A stretch of 64,000 nucleotides of DNA from Carpediemonas membranifera BICM (taxonomy: Eukaryota > Protista > Fornicata), in the NCBI GenBank assembly GCA_019828565.1, contig JAHDYR010000047.1, positions 5,541 through 69,540 on the forward strand, read 5' to 3'. Position 1 is the first letter of the stretch; each line of letters begins with the position of its first letter. Of this stretch, positions 53,826 through 63,265 are shown piece after piece. Both the position numbers and the translations under genes were made by a program. The notes beneath the pieces were generated by a model. The model was not told the origin of the DNA. It was given only the letters and a program-made list of their open reading frames with translations, and ran no database searches.

Positions 53826-54042
53826 TTGATTGATAAACTTTGTACAGGAATATTAAGAAAGGCGTGTTAATAATCGCGTGAGCCTCACTGAGTCCTCTTA
53901 CTTGACGAAGGCAGCGCCATGGGACAGAACGAGTATTTTGACTCCGTCGTTGTCCCCACGGACTGATCCTGGATCAAGTAGGTAATTGTATAACTTGTAT
54001 TACTCTGCCGTGGCCCTTGTTTATTATTATTATTTGCACATG

Positions 54043-54415
54043 AGCTCACGGCACCCTAGAGTGCCGAGGCGCGGGCGAGACCCCAGCGGGACCGGGTCGC
54101 CGTGCTAAGAGGTTGAATCTGGTGGGAGTTTCGGATACGAATCGAGGTGATTCGATCCGGGAGAATCGATGGCGCAATCGACTGAAAATGGAGTCAGACC
54201 AAGAGAAATGGCGGAAGAGACCGCCGGACAGATAAGATGTGCACTTTAGGTCACACTTCGAAACGCATCGGCAGGTGTCGGAGCCGTTCCGGACCTGACC
54301 GGATCGCGAGACGAGGATTTACCCAGGTCTGTCATAAGAGCTCGGGGAAGCCACCCGAAGTAAATACTCGCCCCCCCATTTTGGTTGGATTTAAGAGGGC
54401 TCTCTGTTATAGAGC
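54043..54415 (+). mobile_element. Solo A-spacer-B remnant 1 of a YR retrotransposon
   Basis: Begins AGC, carries an abortive gag start MAEET (54208; same as the 1405 ORF), ends TAAAT-C-run-TTGG...TTATAGAGC. Confidence 0.55.
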
Positions 54416-54906
54416 CACACTTTGTGGAGAGCAGCACTCGACCAGGGCACCCGGGGTGCTGAGGGTCGGAGGGTCCCGCGGGGAGCGCGGGCCGGAGACT
54501 ATTGATCGTTGGATTGATTCGACCAGATGTGCAGGATATGGCAGAATTCGAAAGATGCCCGAAGAAGACACGGGCACGCCCAAGGCAGAGGGTCCCGAAC
54601 GACCTGCCTGGCGTACTGGCACCACATCAGGTGTCTGAGATTTATCACCTCGGGTGATGGGTTTTGGCGCAATGTGCAGGATAAGGACAATGCCAGAAGA
54701 GTTGTCGCTAGCAGCGACGGCGCCAGGACCGACGCTGGTCAAGGCCAGTGTACCTGCTCGTCAGGTAAGGCGAGCCAGTTCGACTTACCCAGAGAATGCC
54801 AGGTGGCGGTAAGTCCCGAATATTTACATAGCAAACCAGGGGTTTCTTGTAAATATTCTTCCTCCGTTGGAAAGACGTCGTATGTCATAAGGCTTGGTTA
54901 TCAAGC
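54413..54906 (+). mobile_element. Solo A-spacer-B remnant 2 of a YR retrotransposon
   Basis: Abortive MPEEDT start (54555); 54864-54906 aligns ungapped 29/43 to repeat B and ends in AGC. Confidence 0.65.
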
Positions 54907-55029
54907 TGGCGTTACATCGCGCTGACAGGTTACCTCGGGTAACGGGCCGTGAGCGGAGGGCAATGAGATCGCCTCGCTCCGGCATGGTGATGCGCCGACC
55001 AGGCGAGCCGCGCAGTTTATGCGGGCAGA

Positions 55030-55557
55030 ATGGTAGAAAATTCGGAACATCCAGATCCGACGGCAACGAGGCTCAATAACCTAGAAGCCTCAATCGCTAC
55101 CATCTCGCAACAGCTTGCAAAGCTTAATCCGCCTCCTCCGCCGCCCGAGACCGAGCCGCCGAAGGAATCTCAAATTGATTTCTTCCCTGAACAAGATGAA
55201 GCGGATATTGACCAAACACTGGCAGAGATGGATGCATACGGCGAGCTTCCGACAAAGAGACCACTTAAGGCGGAAGCAAAGTGGCTTCGCCGCGTGATGG
55301 TGATCGTCAACGCCCTCGACGACGAGCCGCTCAAAGCAAGACTCCTGGTGGAACTCCAAGCACGCCGTACCCTTCTGGACCTCAAGGACGACAACTGGTC
55401 GGACGCAACCTGCGAACTGTTTCTCGACTTGTTCAACACGTCCCAGACCAAAACCCCCCGTGCCATCTCCTACTGCGCAGCCAAAGCCAGAGCCAAGGGT
55501 AAGAGAAAGGACCAGCCCCAGAACAAAGGGGGGTTTCACAAGAAGCACAAGAAGTAG
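55030..55557 (+). CDS. Gag-like ORF1
   Basis: First ORF, starts within repeat A, basic C-terminus. Confidence 0.75.
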   Translation: MVENSEHPDPTATRLNNLEASIATISQQLAKLNPPPPPPETEPPKESQIDFFPEQDEADIDQTLAEMDAYGELPTKRPLKAEAKWLRRVMVIVNALDDEPLKARLLVELQARRTLLDLKDDNWSDATCELFLDLFNTSQTKTPRAISYCAAKARAKGKRKDQPQNKGGFHKKHKK

Positions 55558-55586
55558 CCCTTGCCACAGATGTTCAGTTCCCGTCA

Positions 55587-57606
55587 ATGAACAAAAAGTG
55601 GCCGGTGTGGGCAAGACTCGGTGCCTCCCCCGAGGTAGTAAGCTGGCTGCGGGATGGCGTCCCTATCCACCTCACCTCTGCGCCCCCTCCACCAGAACCG
55701 CAAAGGCGAGTGGACCCCCGCCTACTCCCGAAGATCGAAGAGCTAGTCGCCAAGGGCGTCCTCTCCCCGTGCCCGATAGACGAACTGCGTCACAGCGCAC
55801 CCCTGTTCGCGGTGTCGAAGGGCAAAGACGATGTCCGCCCCGTGCACGACCTCCGAGCCCTGAACGAGTTGACAGCAGAGCTGAGGGTGTTTCGTCTGTT
55901 CGGCATCAGACGGGCGGTCCGCAATCTGCACAAGAACGACTACATGATCAAGATAGACCTAGCATCGGGATACCACCAACTTGGCGTCGCCTCGCGAGAC
56001 TCCCCCCTCCTAGGCGTGGTCCTACCGGACGGCCGCGCATTCAGGTACAACACACTCGGCTTCGGATGGACAGCGGCGCCGTACGTGTTCCAGAGCACGA
56101 CCATACAGCTTGCAAAGATCATCGCACACAGGTTCGGGGTGACCATCGCGGTCTATCTCGACGACTTCTTAGTGTCCCATGCCTCCCCATCGTACCTAGC
56201 TTCGGTCACCCCGCAGATCATCGACCTCATGCTATCGCTGGGGGCGATACCGGGCCTCAACAAGTGCGTCCTCACGCCGACCCAGCAGGTAGACTACCTA
56301 GGTGTCCACATAGACACCGCAAGCGAGTCCCTAAGAATCTCAAAAGACAAGGCCGAGGCCTACACGGCCACGATCTCCAAGGCCCTCCGGGTCGGGTCCA
56401 TCACAGCTTCAGACTGGCAGAAGCTCCTAGGCCGTCTGTCATTCTTCGCAGGGACCACACAGTTCGCCCGCCTCGCACTCAGACCACTGCAGGCCACCCC
56501 TACGACGGAGACCGTCCACCTCTCCAGCCAAATCCGCAGGCAGCTGGCGGCGTGGCAAGTCCTCCTCCGCGATCGCCCACCCAAGAGGTTCGCCGAAGCA
56601 AGAGCGGACTGGGAAATACGCGATACGCTCCAGATTTCTGTCACCTCAGACGCATCAACGTCCGGCTGGGGAGCATGCCTGTTCAATGGGGAGAAGGGAG
56701 CGGCATCACAGGGTGCCTTCCCCCCTCATCTCAAGGGGGGAACACATTGGCGTCAAGGAGCTCTTCGCGATCGCTCAGGCGATCAATCTCGTGCCCCAGC
56801 AGGAGTCACGCTCCTCTCTCACAGTCTTTGCCGACAACTCAGCTGCCATCAGCTGGGTAAACAGACGGGGATCGCCGAACCTCCCCCCAGCCGCACACCA
56901 GATCCTACAGGACATCTACAACACGGCAGAAACCAAGCGCCTCGACGTCCACTGCTTCCATATTGCCGGACACCTGAATGTCCAGGCGGACAGGCTCTCC
57001 AGGTTCGCCAAGCTCGACTGGTCGTCACCCCGAGAAGTCTTGGAAACCATCATGCGCAAGTGGGGGCCGGTCGAGATCGACGTCACAGCACGCCCCGACA
57101 AGGTTCTGGCCTTACCAGGCTTTGCAGAAATAGCCTGGTCAATCCACGACAACGGCTTCCAGATGGACTGGAGGGGAGTCAGGATTTATATAGCTCCTCC
57201 TATAGCCCTTCTTGGAGTGACGTGTCGTCGCCTCCAGACAATACGCGCCTCGACCCAGACTGGGAACCCTCGACACTGGAGATCAGCGGCGATAGTCCTG
57301 TGCCCGGACCTCAACTCGCCCGAGGTCCGAGCCATCAAACGTTTGACACCCCTCAAGTTGTACCTCAGAGTCCAGGCGAAACACCTCCTGCAGTCCGAGC
57401 TAGCCTGGACAGCGACAGACAAGGGCAAGATCCGCTTCGTGGCGCTTATCCTGAAAACCCGTTCCAAGCCCTCCTCGCTGACGACCGACTATCACATTTC
57501 AGAAACGAATCGTCGCGCCGCACAGCAGCGGGCTGGGTCGCCAAATTCCTCCAATCCCGCAACGCGAGCCACTCACACGCGCAACAGCTCAAAGAGTTCC
57601 TTCTGA
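55587..57606 (+). CDS. RT-RNase H-adenine methyltransferase-like ORF (frameshift at the G run near 56736)
   Basis: DLRALN, KIDLASGYHQ, GFGW..APYVF, YLDDFL, SDASTSGWG, KELFAI, ADN, NVQADRLSR; MT-like WGPVEIDV..DW..YIAPP. Confidence 0.9.
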
Positions 57607-58364
57607 CCGAGGGTACCACGTCGGGCCCACAGTCGATACACAGGAAAGGCTACTGGATTTGCGAGGCCGCCCCACTCGTGTCTGACTGGCGCCCCCCGAT
57701 CGCTGCCAAGCAGATAATCGCCGCCGCCCGGAACGTCGCCTCTGTAGAAGGCCTGACCGGGGGTGCGAAGCCTGTCACGTCCGCGAGAGTCCGCAGGGTC
57801 ATAGACAGACGTCGGAAGTCACCCCAAGCCTTCCAGGCCGCCCTCTTTTCTGCTCTCTGCTTTATCACCGTGAGTAGAGGCGCAGAGATCTTTGGACTCA
57901 GACGAAGAGACGTCGAGTTCGACGCTGATGGCAATGCCCTCCTTCTGTTCGCGAGAACTAAGACTGCCACAGGCGTCCGCAAGCTGGTACCAAACCAATC
58001 GTGGGCCCGCTTTAACCCAGCAAGGGCCCTGAAGGCATGGGTCCCCACGGCAACGCGCCGCGACGACGACCTCATCTGGCGGGCGATCACCTCAACCGGT
58101 GGTATTTCACTATCGAAGCCGCTACCGGCGTCAACCCTCCGCCACTGGATCCACCAGGCGTACGGCACCGACATTTCGTGGCACTCATTCCGCAAGGGCG
58201 CCACCACGGAGTTGGCGGTAGCCCACACGAGTACCGAAGTCCTCCTGTCCATGGGGACGTGGGCCTCCACGAAAAGCATGCTGAGATATATGGGCAACGG
58301 GGTCCGCACACACCCGGGGGTCCAGGGACACCTGGCCTCCATCCTTCTCCAACCACCACTTTAA
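57440..58364 (+). CDS. Tyrosine recombinase
   Basis: SRGAEI (R), KT (K), HSFRKG (HxxR), GTW, MLRY (Y). Start uncertain; overlaps pol. Confidence 0.9.
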
Positions 58365-58924
58365 ATCTCTGACGGGAGCTAGTGGCTGGGAGAGCTAGGT
58401 AGGGTGGGGCTGACACGCGTTACAACGGCAGATGTAAGCCACAACAGACATTCTTTGACGCGGTCTCTCGAGGAGACGGTCGGTTTGGGCTCGCAAGCGT
58501 GCCTGCAAGCCATTCCACTATGCTCGTTGCCGGTGGGATATCCCCGTTGGGTAGAGCAAGTATGTCTAGAGGCTAGGACAGCTAGCTGGCGTTACATCGC
58601 GCTGACAGGTTACCTCGGGTAACGGGCCGTGAGCGGAGGGCAATGAGATCGCCTCGCTCCGGCATGGTGATGCGCCGACCAGGCGAGCCGCGCAGTTTAT
58701 GCGGGCAGAATGGTAGAAAATTCGGAACATCCAGATCCGACGGCACGATACTGGTCAAGACCGGTATATCCGCCCAGTAGGTAAGCTGGCCGGAGTCCCC
58801 TGATCGTTTACACTAGCTCTCTTCTTTAATAAACGATCGCCCCCCCCCCGTTGGGTAGAGCAAGTATGTCTAGAGGCTAGGACAGCTAGCGCGGCTATCA
58901 GGCTCACAAAAATTGTATAAAATG

Positions 58925-58997
58925 TGGACGAGCTGGGATTTGAACCCAGGGCCTCGTGCATGCTAAGCACGCGCTCTACCAACTGAGCTACACGCCC
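58925..58997 (-). tRNA. tRNA-Ala(AGC)
   Basis: GGGCGTGTAGCTCAGTTGGTAGAGCGCGTGCTTAGCATGCACGAGGCCCTGGGTTCAAATCCCAGCTCGTCCA followed by TTTT. Confidence 0.95.
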
Positions 58998-58998
58998 T

Positions 58999-61900
58999 TT
59001 AATCATCAGAAAGAACGTTCTTACCGCGCGCAGAGGGTCAGCAGGGTGGGGGTCCCTAGTAGAGCTCGTGGGTTATGTAGTCGGAGTCGTAAGCCTCGGC
59101 GGGGTCGCTTTCGGGAAATCGAAATTTTGCACATGTGCAAAAATCTCGGATGTCTCGACTGGCTCGACTACGACGCCTCTCTCACACGCGAAGGGCACAC
59201 CACAGTTAGAGCTGTGCCACGCGGCACTGCTCGCGGTAGTCACGGATGACCGCCGCGTTCCCAGCCCACACAGCCAAGACGACCCGACTGCGCAGGTCCC
59301 GACGGACCTCCGCGCTCAGACCGAGCCTCTCGCACAGACGCCACACCCAGCACGACTTGCGGTCCTCGGGGTCAGCTCTCGTGTTGCCAACGAGGTCACA
59401 GCTGGCCGCGATGAGCTCGCAGTCGAACCTCGAGTACTGAGCGGCCTTGTCACGGATCCCATCCTTGATCGACTGTGAGACGACCACATCGACGATCATA
59501 TCGCCGTGGAGGGGCGTTCCATCAGCTGACGTTGCCGCTAGCATGAGCAGATCGGCCTTCACCTCCGTCGGGCCCGTCCCGTTGGGCATGTAGGCCATAC
59601 TGGTGTGATCCAGCGGAACCTCGCGCCGTTTGGGGACGAACTGCTCCGAGCAAACGTCGTAGATGGCGTCTCTGACGCCGTTATGACGCTCGATCCGGGC
59701 ACCGCCCTTGAGGCGAACACAAGAGAGTCCATGAGACCAATCCGCAACAGATCTGCCGCACAGGGGGCATGGTTTGGCTTTTTCTATCACGTAGGGGTCA
59801 AGAGACAGGTGTAGGCGGAGAATTGCAGTTGCCAAATCGGAACCCGAAAGAACGGGATCGAACGGCGTCAATGTGGACACTGCACGCACATAAGGCTCAG
59901 AAATAAACGATCTCTTCGCCGTAAGCTCCTTCTGCTTGAACTCCCGCACTTTCGTCGTCAGTTCAAACTGCGGAGTCGAAGTCTTCCACTTCTTCAGGGC
60001 ATCCACGTCCTGCGGACCACCAGCAGCACCAACCGCCTGAAATGCCTCATTGGGCACGTTCAGTGAGATGTTTTGGTCAAAGAGCTGCTTCACGGCACCG
60101 AGATATGCCGCCGGCCACACGATGGACGGAATTCCCCATCCAAGACCTCCCTGCGTGATGCTAAGGCCCGCTCTTTCGAGCGTACCAATCACTGCATCGG
60201 CACCAACGAGGTTGGAGAGCAATGGAACGAGCGTCTCCTCCTCAAAGCGACGCCCAACGCCGACGAGGTCGGGCACACATTGCGGTAGAGGTGCGACAGT
60301 TTGGGCAGCAGGCACGCACGCGTCATGTTGTTAGCGACGATGATAGACGTGGGCCCTACGTCTGCCACCATGTCGCTCACGCGTCCAGACTGCTCGCTGA
60401 CGCCTTCGAACTGCCTGCAGACCTGCTCCTTGACGTACGCAGCCGGCCCCACCGGCGTGCCCAGGACCTTGAAAGCCTCGCCGCGCGGCGCAAGCGAGGA
60501 TTCACTGGCCACTAGGCCCAGCCCGGCGATGACAGTCTTCTTCTCGTTGACCTTCAACCCGACTCTGGCGAAATTGGACGTCGCGGTCATGATGACCGTG
60601 TTCGTCTCACTCTCTGTAGCGTCCTTGGGCATCAGGCAGTAGACATCATCCTGATAGGCATAAAATGCGTAGTTTGGAAACTCGGTCCGAAGATCGTCCA
60701 AAAGGGGCTTCATGCCGCAACTGAACAGCAGCGGGCTCGTAGGATCTCCCCTTGCGGAATTCCTTCGAGTGATCTGAGGACCATCCCGGTTGCTGAGAAC
60801 AGCATTGGATCAAGCAACATCAGTTCGAGGTACTCGGAAAGCGACGGGCAGTATGCAGCTGTCGCATCGCGAAGGTGAGATCTACTCATGCATCCATATG
60901 CGTTGGTAAGATCCAAAGCGATCACCTGACCGCCGCCACGATGATGCTCCCTCACAAGATTGGTTAGCTCCTCGAGCCCGCACTTCTCGCCGAGGCCATA
61001 CTGACCCGGCAACGCCTTGTCGTCCCGCAGCCGGGCAGCAGCCTGACGAACTGCCACCTTCGCTGCGAGACGACGAAGGCTGTCGCCTATTGAGACGGGG
61101 CGCGGCTTGCCATCCTTCTTCGGGATCGGCACAAGGATGCAGTGGGAAAATGGCTCCAGGCAGGCGACGCCCTCGAGCATATCCTCGAGCAGGGGCACAA
61201 GAGCCGCGGCGAGTTCATTCCACCCGATGGCCCGGCCCATCGCCTTCAGATGAAGGTAAGATAGGCCTGAAGGACCCGGTGCGGACTCGGCGTTGAGGCT
61301 CTTAAGTGCCTTCTTCACCGCAGGGACAGTCATTTGGCAGTGGTTCAGTGTGGACGCGGGACCCGACACTGCTGCCAGCCGACTACCAGACGGCTGCACC
61401 TGGCTCTCACAGAGCCTGGCCTCCACCCACGCGCGATCCCCAGCGAACTCTCCGGCGGAGAGAGCTTGCGTGGCGCGAGAATAGAAGCCTCGTTGTCCCA
61501 ACCTGAGTGCGCGCGCACTGGCTTTCAGCCGGGGCTGCTCGGTGGTCCGCTCCGGAGGAGCATAGACCCTGCGCGAAGGTCAAGATGCGGCGGACAACGT
61601 CGGGCTTCCCGTGGGCCGGGGCTGCGGCGTACTCATTGAGCAGCGCGACAAAGCTCTTCGCCCATGCCAGTCTGGCCCTCTTCGCGGGGAGCAACTTCCC
61701 CACAAACATGGCGCTGTGAGCTGGCAAGAACGGCTCGGGGACACTGCGCTGGCGTGCGGCCCCATCAGGTACCCAGGTCACCCGGGGCGCCGGCTGCGGG
61801 ACTGACCCGAAGCAGGCCTGGGCGATCTTGGCAACCACCGGGGGCAGCTTGGTGAAGATCCTACCGCCGTTGGGCAGGACTGGCAGTGTCGACCTGACGG

Positions 61901-62995
61901 TCTCGGGGACAAAGCCCCTCAATGCCTCACAGAGCTGCCGGAGCCGACTCTGGCTGAATCGACCCGTGGCCGACCCACGGTTGGACTCGTCCATAAGGGC
62001 CCGGACGAGGGCTGGGTCGCACAGGGTGGCCGTCACCTGCTCTGGAGTGGTCCAGTGGTCGGCGCGCATGGCGTCGGGGACCCACTCGTCAAAGGTGGCC
62101 CTGATGACAGCAGCAGGGCTGCTGTCCGAGCTCGAGCTCGGTTGCGTGGGTGCCGAGGTATCCTGACTAGAGGCCTCGCCCCCGGTGCCGTAAGGTGACT
62201 CAACACCTACAACTCTGTCGACCAGGGCAACGGCACCACCCGCCTCAGATGTCTGGCCGCCTGCACGTGGTGGCTCCGGAGAGCGCACAATCACTGCGGC
62301 TGGCCTCGTCTGAGACGGGCTGGGCGAGGCATTCTCCGGCCCGGCCAACTCGGCGGGAACGGACGGCGGGGAGTCCGGCACGGCCAACGATGCCTCCTGG
62401 GGCACACTAACCGGTTCGGCCTGAGTTCCGCTGGCATCAGTCGGACTATCCGACGGCAGGAGGCCCATTGTGTTGATTGGGCACCCCATGGAAAGCAACT
62501 CGTCGATCAAATCGTCTCTTTTACTCTCATGAAGAACGCTCTGTGTGCCAGAGGAGTCCAGCAGCACTCGCGTGTCGAGCTTGAGAATAAGGAGACGAAG
62601 AGATGTCGGAGAAAGCTTCATCTGTTCAACGTGAAGGCAGATGCGCTCCAGACCAGCGGATATCCGGTCAATGGAGTCCTTTTTGTCGAACAGGACAGGA
62701 TGAGCGTTGAATAGCGGCGACAGGAAGTACACGATTTCGTTCGCGACGGCGACGTTGAAACGCTTGCTCTTAGCGCTGGCATCAGCAGTAAATAGCATCG
62801 AGATAACGTTCTTCGAGCACAATGCTCGTTTGAAACGCTGTCTTGTCGACGCATGTTCCCGCATTAGCGACGGCGGCACATATCGAAGCAAAGTCGCACG
62901 GAGGAACGCGAAAATCGCGTCTGACGGCTCTTGAAGGGTGCTTACAACGCCTCCGGAAGCTAAAGCGTCCTGGATTGCGCTTTTGGCAAACTTCA
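58999..62995 (-). mobile_element. CRE-like non-LTR retrotransposon (RT plus RLE) inserted in the tRNA-Ala 5' end
   Basis: 15-bp TSD 58984-58998 = 62996-63010; SAPGPSGL, RPVSIGDSLRRL, LDLTNAYG, GIPQG, YQDD; CPLC..H..C, RHNGV, KADLL..IVDV. Confidence 0.9.
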
Positions 62996-62996
62996 T
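59206..62996 (-). CDS. Single RT-RLE polyprotein split by three frameshifts
   Basis: Colinear motifs across ORFs 61407..62996, 60710..61501, 60189..60713 and 59206..60315. Confidence 0.85.
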
Positions 62997-63265
62997 GAGC
63001 TACACGCCCTGCATATCATCGATATGTAAGCTATCACGCCTCGGGCGTGGCTCACGCCCTGACACTGCTGGGTCAGGGTGTGTCAGAACAGGATTCCGGA
63101 GACACGAGAAAGATGGACAAAATATTTAGAAAATCTCGAAAGATATGATTGTGGATACGGTCTTGATCCGTCCCGATCGCGAGCAGATCGTATCCCTCCA
63201 GCAGAAACCGTGAGGATGGCCAGTCCGCCATCGAATTCAGCTAAGTCGAAAGACTATGTTCGGGG

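Follow-up and report, generated by a model that had tools for sequence, protein, structure and literature searches.

Retrotransposons that target transfer RNA (tRNA) genes are known among elements that use an endonuclease with target-primed reverse transcription and among those that use a DDE integrase. To our knowledge, the integration of retrotransposons carrying a gene for a tyrosine recombinase (YR) has never been reconstituted. Two groups of YR elements, the Ngaro and PAT-type elements, are defined by the repeat order A-pol-B-A-B (PMC3783388, PMC3266345, PMC8547959). Ngaro elements possess no methyltransferase domain and usually no overlap between open reading frames (ORFs) (PMC3266345), and those of Cafeteria display solo AB units and type-specific site preferences (PMC8547959). 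The YR retrotransposon DIRS-1 inserts into itself and is given as centromeric, not tRNA-targeted, in a survey of tRNA targeting, a behavior regarded there as a way for elements of compact genomes to reach a safe haven (PMC5006619). In the literature searched, tRNA targeting was not reported for any YR retrotransposon, whether PAT-like, Ngaro, or DIRS. We describe here a locus of Carpediemonas membranifera BICM at which YR retrotransposons are stacked beside a tRNA-Ala gene. The locus lies in a stretch of 64,000 nt (the window) within contig C48 of a 24.2-Mb, 69-contig assembly, which served as the comparison genome.

The segment from 54034 to 58890 of the window is probably a pile, ordered by time, to which five families each contributed one YR retrotransposon insertion on the 3′ side of the tRNA-Ala gene. 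Pieces of four families (R, S, P, and Q) are followed by a full-length element, termed EL, whose 3′ end faces the tRNA. The original prediction for this locus, made from the sequence, held that different YR families had integrated repeatedly, head to tail, at one spot, and the identification of R, S, P, Q, and EL bears this out.

tRNA Genes as the Landing Zone

The 3′ ends of EL were surveyed in 60 fetched loci (L-numbered), and the counts given below refer to these loci and not to a genome-wide census. tRNA genes were called by ARAGORN in the window and the fetched loci and by Rfam RF00005, and no more than 497 tRNA candidates were counted in the 24.2-Mb assembly. Thirteen independent EL 3′ ends were found 20–56 nt beyond the 3′ end of a tRNA, and all 13 are convergent with it. 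The neighboring genes (Ala-AGC twice, Ile, Leu, Thr, Met, Arg-TCT, Arg-CCT, Asp twice, Gly, Val, and Ala-TGC) are counted as 12 different tRNA species, and in all but one of the 13 cases a T-run of at least four begins 1–8 nt past the tRNA. With the number of candidates given above, the chance of a random strand-specific landing in this 37-nt zone is approximately 4e-4 per element. EL lands in one orientation, its 3′ end toward the 3′ end of the tRNA and just past the RNA polymerase III (Pol III) terminator, beside any tRNA species. The stack in the window is as close to its tRNA as had been predicted, but the distance between B2 and the tRNA-Ala 3′ end is 33 nt instead of 34. On the minus strand, this trailer displays T4 and T5 runs at positions 2–5 and 12–16 past the tRNA.

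Other families land in a similar manner. Family S is arranged in the same convergent way beside 10 additional tRNA genes, at distances of 8–74 nt, and the tail of another family lies ~75 nt from three more. Judged by coordinates, a YR-element terminus lies no more than ~80 nt downstream of at least 20 of the 63 best-scoring tRNA genes. One tRNA-Thr-type trailer was entered at 31, 35, and 51 nt (L015, L005, and L016, respectively), while paralogous tRNA-Gly trailers carry EL at 42 nt and S at 38 nt. Because the same trailer is entered at several distances and unrelated trailers are used, the landing site is set by position, not by sequence. The tRNA gene is the main determinant of EL placement.

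The same distribution has to be weighed against selection. It is scarcely credible that insertion is untargeted and that, in a compact genome, only the copies in harmless tRNA trailers survive. The genome is gene-dense, the distance from the stack to the end of a coding gene is 208 nt, and the flanks of tRNA genes are established safe havens (PMC5006619), yet the copies are 99.4–100% identical, which leaves little time for purging. A 37-nt zone combined with strict orientation in 13/13 cases is not expected from selection alone, and within the surveyed loci no EL copy was seen 5′ of a tRNA gene at a comparable distance or in other intergenic DNA, except within stacks.

Two further observations concern tRNA genes of the window. 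The 5′ side of tRNA-Ala is abutted by a second, unrelated element bearing a reverse transcriptase (RT) (59200–63000, minus strand; weak RVT_1 match in the ORF 60189–60713), so that retroelements flank this gene on both sides. A B-like tail (GTAAATGTTCTACCCCCATTGG...) is located at ~1855–1915, 270–330 nt downstream of tRNA-Asp (1511–1584) and on the same strand; the trailer of this tRNA is itself unoccupied.

Integration Junctions

AGC had been noted at both ends of EL and at its internal B/A junction, and is indeed found at 54904–54906, 58584–58586, and 58888–58890. From this pattern, AGC was proposed as the crossover core of an attachment site. In the corresponding model, the attachment site is defined by sequence and regenerated with each insertion, and the tRNA is incidental. 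AGC on both sides of EL in the window and at B1|A2 speaks for such a core, as do the frequent exact reuse of B ends and the DIRS1 model, in which a 3-bp circle junction recombines with an identical genomic triplet (PMC3266345). The model is contradicted by the survey of 5′ junctions, and we give it very little credence. The triplet before A1 varies (GGC, ATC, TAG, TAT, TTA, AAT, GCG, CGC, GCC, CTC, ACT, AAG, and CTT), and AGC precedes A1 only where the B of the upstream neighbor itself ends in AGC, as in EL's own family and in Q. At the EL 3′ end, AGC always follows GCT. Since the bases before A1 vary and the terminal AGC of B is constant, AGC is part of the element, as the final triplet of the B repeats of both EL and Q, and the AGC upstream of A1 in the window is the homologous end of Q's B. 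The predicted similarity of this B-like end (54864–54906) to the B of EL also holds, with 29 of 43 ungapped positions matching, a value that no other plus-strand position in the 64-kb window equals.

Four target sites could be rebuilt from uninterrupted paralogues, and each reveals a clean insertion without duplication, loss, or a shared AGC. EL was inserted at TTAT^AGAG within the B of S (L009) and at TAAT^GAAA within the B of W (L013/L008), as well as at GGC^CCG in L003 (uninterrupted in L004) and at CGC^TAG in L015 (uninterrupted in L016 and L005). Insertion by these elements involves no target duplication or loss and needs no shared trinucleotide, and the four clean sites contradict the strict form of the DIRS1 3-bp identity model. 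Both AGC and TGG were ruled out as a shared crossover triplet by the junction survey. First-time sites are unrelated tRNA trailers, and the use of such trailers at 20–56 nt from 12 tRNA species is at odds with the single regenerated attachment site of the original prediction; what survives of that proposal is a weaker form, the exact reuse of B ends.

Stacking and Reuse of B Ends

Wherever the 5′ junction of a tRNA-adjacent EL copy could be read (11 of 11 copies), an older YR unit immediately precedes the copy. As several families share the landing zone, a newcomer arrives at the previous B end, a few bases beyond it, or tens of bases inside it. The offset of EL A1 from the resident B end ranges from −32 to +28 nt, with an excess at 0 to +3, where about 6–9 of about 17 stacked EL junctions fall. 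Exact reuse was found in the window (Q), in L011 and L019 (R), and in three EL–EL tandems, which meet precisely at B|A; the offset is +1 nt in L014 and +3 nt in L018.

Such abutment might be a by-product of hitting the same position twice, if the tRNA and its Pol III complex alone directed insertion as a pure distance ruler. First-time insertions cluster 31–43 nt from the tRNA end, repeat hits on one base are expected sometimes, and many newcomers lie inside or beyond the old B end across the range of offsets given above. Families with quite different B ends (R, S, and Z) are abutted as well. From the observed spread of positions (31/35/51 and 38/42 nt), however, well under 10% of events should coincide exactly, a figure exceeded by the share of stacked EL junctions at 0 to +3, and the EL–EL tandems are joined without any offset. 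We regard a pure ruler as possible but unlikely. Because exact reuse is commoner than the spread predicts, a resident B end may act as a recombinase half-site, a role that is plausible but unproven.

Composition of the Stack

The region 54034–54906 was divided into repeat pieces by searching the organism's own genome (Table 1). Instead of the two A-spacer-B units originally proposed, the ~870 nt upstream of EL consist of four independently repeated pieces of four other YR families, and the stack begins at ~54034, not at 54043; the sequence at 53826–54040 is single-copy in the genome.

Table 1. Window coordinates of the stacked units, the parts of EL, and the adjoining tRNA gene
Feature	Position	Strand	Remarks
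Unit R, A repeat and gag start (ATG ~54170), outermost stack member	54034..54237	+	five other copies, 97–98% identity
Unit S, 3′ terminal unit (A2-spacer-B2) without first ~46 nt of A2	54237..54429	+	at least 25 copies, 96–98%
Unit P, A repeat (155 nt, gag ATG 54540) and first 20 nt of spacer	54429..54603	+	genome repeat matches
13-nt linker CTGCCTGGCGTAC between P and Q	54604..54616	+	outside every repeat match
Unit Q, complete 290-nt A-spacer-B unit related to EL	54617..54906	+	genome repeat matches
EL, full-length YR retrotransposon	54907..58890	+	split direct repeats A1-gag-RT/YR-B1A2-spacer-B2
EL A1 repeat	54907-55065	+	159 nt, 100% identical to A2
EL gag ORF	55030-55557	+	175 aa
EL RT...YR reading frames	55587-58364	+	RVT_1 3e-20, Phage_integrase 2.5e-5
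EL B1 repeat	58542-58586	+	45 nt, 100% identical to B2; abuts A2
EL A2 repeat	58587-58745	+	159 nt, 100% identical to A1
EL spacer	58746-58845	+	100 nt; AATAAA at 58829-58834
EL B2 repeat	58846-58890	+	45 nt, 100% identical to B1
A-repeat hairpin	54929-54943, 58609-58623 (EL); 54644-54658 (Q); ~54447-54461 (P); ~54055-54070 (R)
tRNA-Ala 3′ trailer, EL abuts far end	58891..58923	-	Pol III terminator T-runs
tRNA-Ala(AGC) gene, intact, convergent with stack	58924-58997	-	ARAGORN; Rfam RF00005 67.4 bits, C48:64465-64537

Unit R lacks the 57-nt spacer-plus-B tail that is carried by R solos elsewhere (L041, L042, and L044), which have the structure A + GATAAATGTCCAA + C-run + TTGGG...AAAATC. One R copy (L060) continues into a 155-aa gag ORF. 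The tail of S reads GTAAATACTCG-C7-ATTTTGGTTGG, and S units follow B1 and a YR-encoding pol in L046, L049–L052, L054, L055, and L058; the YR of this family is 38% identical to that of EL. Unit P is missing the remaining spacer and B. Ten P copies in the genome match positions 1–175 and ten match only 1–155, with pairs separated by 3.5 kb in which a 155-nt match comes before a 175-nt one (C6:1275331/1271774 and C6:257361/260899). The pairs therefore represent A1 and A2 of full elements, and the P of the window is an A2-type copy. The pol that follows the P A1 copy in L040 is 50% identical to EL pol.

Unit Q begins TGGCACCACATC, ends ...GGTTATCAAGC, and is collinear with the A2-spacer-B2 of EL (176 identities, z = 5.6 versus shuffles). 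Three other Q copies are identical at 100%, two at 94%, and two 3′-truncated ones at 99%, with different flanks each time. The remnants had been expected to be termini of full elements, which agrees with the pol-bearing relatives of S and P; no full-length Q was present among all 33 scored candidates, and no full-length autonomous R element was found in the genome data examined. An abortive gag start had been expected in each unit as well. Gag starts are clear in R, P, and EL but degenerate in Q and S, while tails of the anticipated TAAA/C-run/TTGG type are present in EL (58827–58855), Q (54849–54871), and S (54361–54389).

No genomic match elsewhere extends across any of the junctions R|S, P|Q, and Q|EL, the matches breaking at 54237, 54428-30, 54603/54614, and 54906. 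As no other locus has these unit junctions, the stack was built in place. Assembly elsewhere, or by ectopic recombination or duplication among clusters, is a remote prospect for the window: a junction of truncated S with EL is shared by L006 and L012, and a [Q–20 nt–Y] unit is tandemly duplicated on C18, but the absence of matches across the window junctions and the single-copy distal flank argue against it. The duplication on C18 (L033/L034, C18:300771–308036) is of interest in its own right. Its 3975-bp unit comprises Q, 20 nt, and the A-gag-pol-B of family Y, and the B of Y joins the A of Q exactly, which suggests that a two-family composite was copied as one unit.

Polarity and Decay

The polarity of stacks was assessed from private substitutions per kb in EL copies, scored without building a consensus and compared by a one-sided Mann–Whitney test. 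The median is 0.27/kb in the 13 tRNA-adjacent EL copies and 3.4/kb in six copies with an element on their 3′ side (P = 0.008). In the window, identity to related copies is 97–98% for R and S and 100% for P, Q, and EL. Taken together, the substitution test and this gradient support the predicted placement of the youngest member next to the tRNA. Since newcomers land beside the tRNA, older members are pushed away from it.

Collapse to solo units by A1/A2 recombination had also been proposed. The solo A-spacer-B units, Q in the window and the R solos at the loci named above, fit this origin, and six EL short forms with the structure A-internal-B (L014–L019) fit recombination between B1 and B2. 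The proposal does not extend to R and P in the window, which are not simple A1/A2 solos; R, P, and the 5′-truncated S need further deletions across unit junctions. Two other routes were considered and ruled out. Permuted integration at B1|A2 does not account for the short forms, as EL's own A-spacer-B does not precede them, and splitting by a later insertion does not account for the A-only pieces of R and P, as their missing tails are not found on the tRNA side.

Several points weigh against a time-ordered pile of insertions. The R|S and P|Q junctions fit neither simple insertion nor A1/A2 collapse, and at some 5′ junctions inside an older B (L006/L012 and L007) the remainder that should be present on the far side is missing, so certain events also involved deletions or rearrangements. 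The B ends of families Z and of the L016 and L030 types lack independent definition, making the exact-reuse count soft, and the "buried" EL class of the substitution test (n = 6) was assigned by reading 3′ flanks. The survey comprises 60 loci, and the sole indication of current EL activity is the presence of near-identical copies. Finally, EL gag matched no Pfam family and had no Atlas neighbor.

The Full-Length Element

EL is represented in the genome by at least 11 full copies at 99.4–100% identity, plus tandems, short forms, and fragments. Every surveyed copy starts with TGGCG and finishes with GCTAGC. The termini are direct, and no long inverted repeat joins the ends of EL. Protein domains were sought with Pfam profiles, with gag also compared with Atlas and the putative methyltransferase region with PDB sequences. 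The Phage_integrase match scores 24.6 bits, just below the 27.1 cut-off, and spans 163 of 172 profile positions. Beyond the RVT_1/Phage_integrase set, no other Pfam domain, including DDE integrase or protease, was found above threshold in EL. In the modal copies (L006 and L010), a 672-aa RT ORF and a 765-aa YR ORF overlap by ~1.5 kb in different frames (L006:2024–4800). A weak Dam-like stretch follows RT (Pfam E = 0.006–0.02; 14.9–16.8 bits versus a threshold of 28.1); the PDB sequence search with this region gave no match.

The element in the window had been described as intact, which is true of its repeats, with A1 equal to A2 and B1 equal to B2, but not, as assembled, of its coding region. 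A G6 run at 56733–56738, which is G5 in 27 of 28 other EL copies, adds a G that fuses the frames and breaks the usual 672-aa RT ORF. The extra base may be a real frameshift of this copy or a homopolymer assembly error. C-runs near this position also differ in length among EL copies.

Three features of EL and related families deserve mention. The B1|A2 junction, at which the circle is presumed to be joined, falls within a perfect 10-bp palindrome (58579–58588; CAGCTAGC|TG) that may constitute the recombinase crossover site. At ~23 nt from the start of the A repeat, eight families retain, through compensatory changes, a hairpin of 6 bp with a 3-nt loop: both partners differ in three of the six pairs, some pairs are G-U, pairing holds in 91.7% of cells, and the covariation score was reached by 0 of 500 shuffles. 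This covariation points to a probable role in single-stranded RNA or cDNA. Lastly, contig C1 at about 736–799 kb is dense in EL fragments and partial copies, in contrast to the dispersed tRNA-linked copies.

Proposed Mechanism and Implications

Accumulation of a time-ordered pile could proceed as follows. A cDNA circle would be closed via the internal B1A2 junction, in line with the published split-direct-repeat model, and the element's recombinase would cut at the B|A junction. The integration complex may be held at the tRNA gene by a tether to the Pol III machinery, at TFIIIC or the terminator region. A resident B end, if employed as a recombinase half-site, would explain the frequent exact reuse of the boundary between B end and flank. 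Recombination between A1 and A2 would subsequently give solos, recombination between B1 and B2 would give short forms, and deletions across unit junctions would give the truncated R, S, and P pieces.

A more ambitious, two-tier scheme is tentative, and we consider it improbable though worth stating. A Pol III-linked tether would bring the circle to the trailer, and the B of any resident element, including one from a different family, would be a portable half-site, so that the entry site is recreated with each insertion. Stacks would then be a eukaryotic, retroelement-based analogue of integron arrays, with 290-nt units such as Q as cassettes moved in trans. The basis for viewing Q as a cassette is the existence of four copies with ~100% identity and the lack of any full-length parent among the candidates scored.

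Understood as a pile of successive insertions, the ordered stacks provide a built-in relative clock of transposon invasions. The genome offers dozens of young, exactly bounded junctions that have no duplication and do not require a DIRS1-type shared triplet, making the question of YR integration directly testable. Orientation-specific landing of a recombinase beside Pol III genes is also a possible tool for safe-harbor integration.

Comparison with Known Systems

EL resembles PAT-like and Ngaro elements in having gag, RT, and a YR in place of a DDE integrase, A1-ORFs-B1-A2-B2 as the order of its split direct repeats, no target-site duplication, and solo AB units such as those reported in Cafeteria (PMC8547959; PMC3783388; PMC3266345). 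The combination of RT and YR with no DDE integrase or protease, together with the split direct repeats, agrees with Ngaro. The difference is that the RT and YR ORFs of EL overlap by 1.5 kb and are accompanied by the weak Dam-like stretch, which are traits of PAT and DIRS1. Split direct repeats and overlapping ORFs fit a PAT-like element, a group marked by a DIRS1-like set of genes with a Dam-like methyltransferase domain, although the Dam match is sub-threshold (14.9–16.8 versus 28.1 bits). On these sequence features, the classification of EL leans toward PAT-like over Ngaro.

DIRS-1 of Dictyostelium is likewise a YR retrotransposon; it preferentially targets resident copies and forms clusters (PMC5006619; PMC3266345). 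Unlike DIRS1-like elements, which have inverted terminal repeats plus an internal complementary region, EL has direct termini. The stacks of C. membranifera further differ in combining direct split repeats with an ordered head-to-tail arrangement at dispersed tRNA genes and in requiring no shared 3-bp target.

Bacterial integrons and tRNA-targeting integrative elements share with this system a tyrosine recombinase, the newest unit at the entry point, and tRNA landing sites. The integron-like chronological array of the original prediction is apt insofar as the newest unit lies next to the entry. It fails in that there is no single resident integrase on a fixed platform and no primary attachment site equivalent to attI; every full unit supplies a recombinase of its own and moves via RNA. 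Unlike tRNA-targeting integrative elements, EL shows no sequence identity with the tRNA 3′ end.

The closest parallel in target choice is provided by the tRNA-targeting retrotransposons TRE3/TRE5 and DGLT-A of Dictyostelium and Ty1/Ty3 of yeast, which also insert with position and orientation specificity beside any tRNA gene and leave the gene intact (PMC5006619). EL displays the same narrow distance window, indifference to tRNA species, and orientation bias (13/13, with family S behaving likewise). While those elements depend on an apurinic endonuclease with target-primed reverse transcription or on a DDE integrase and generate target duplications, here a tyrosine recombinase is involved, no duplication is formed, and the zone lies 20–56 nt past the tRNA 3′ end. 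Targeting of tRNA genes by YR retrotransposons would mean that this safe haven of a compact genome has been reached by yet another independent route.

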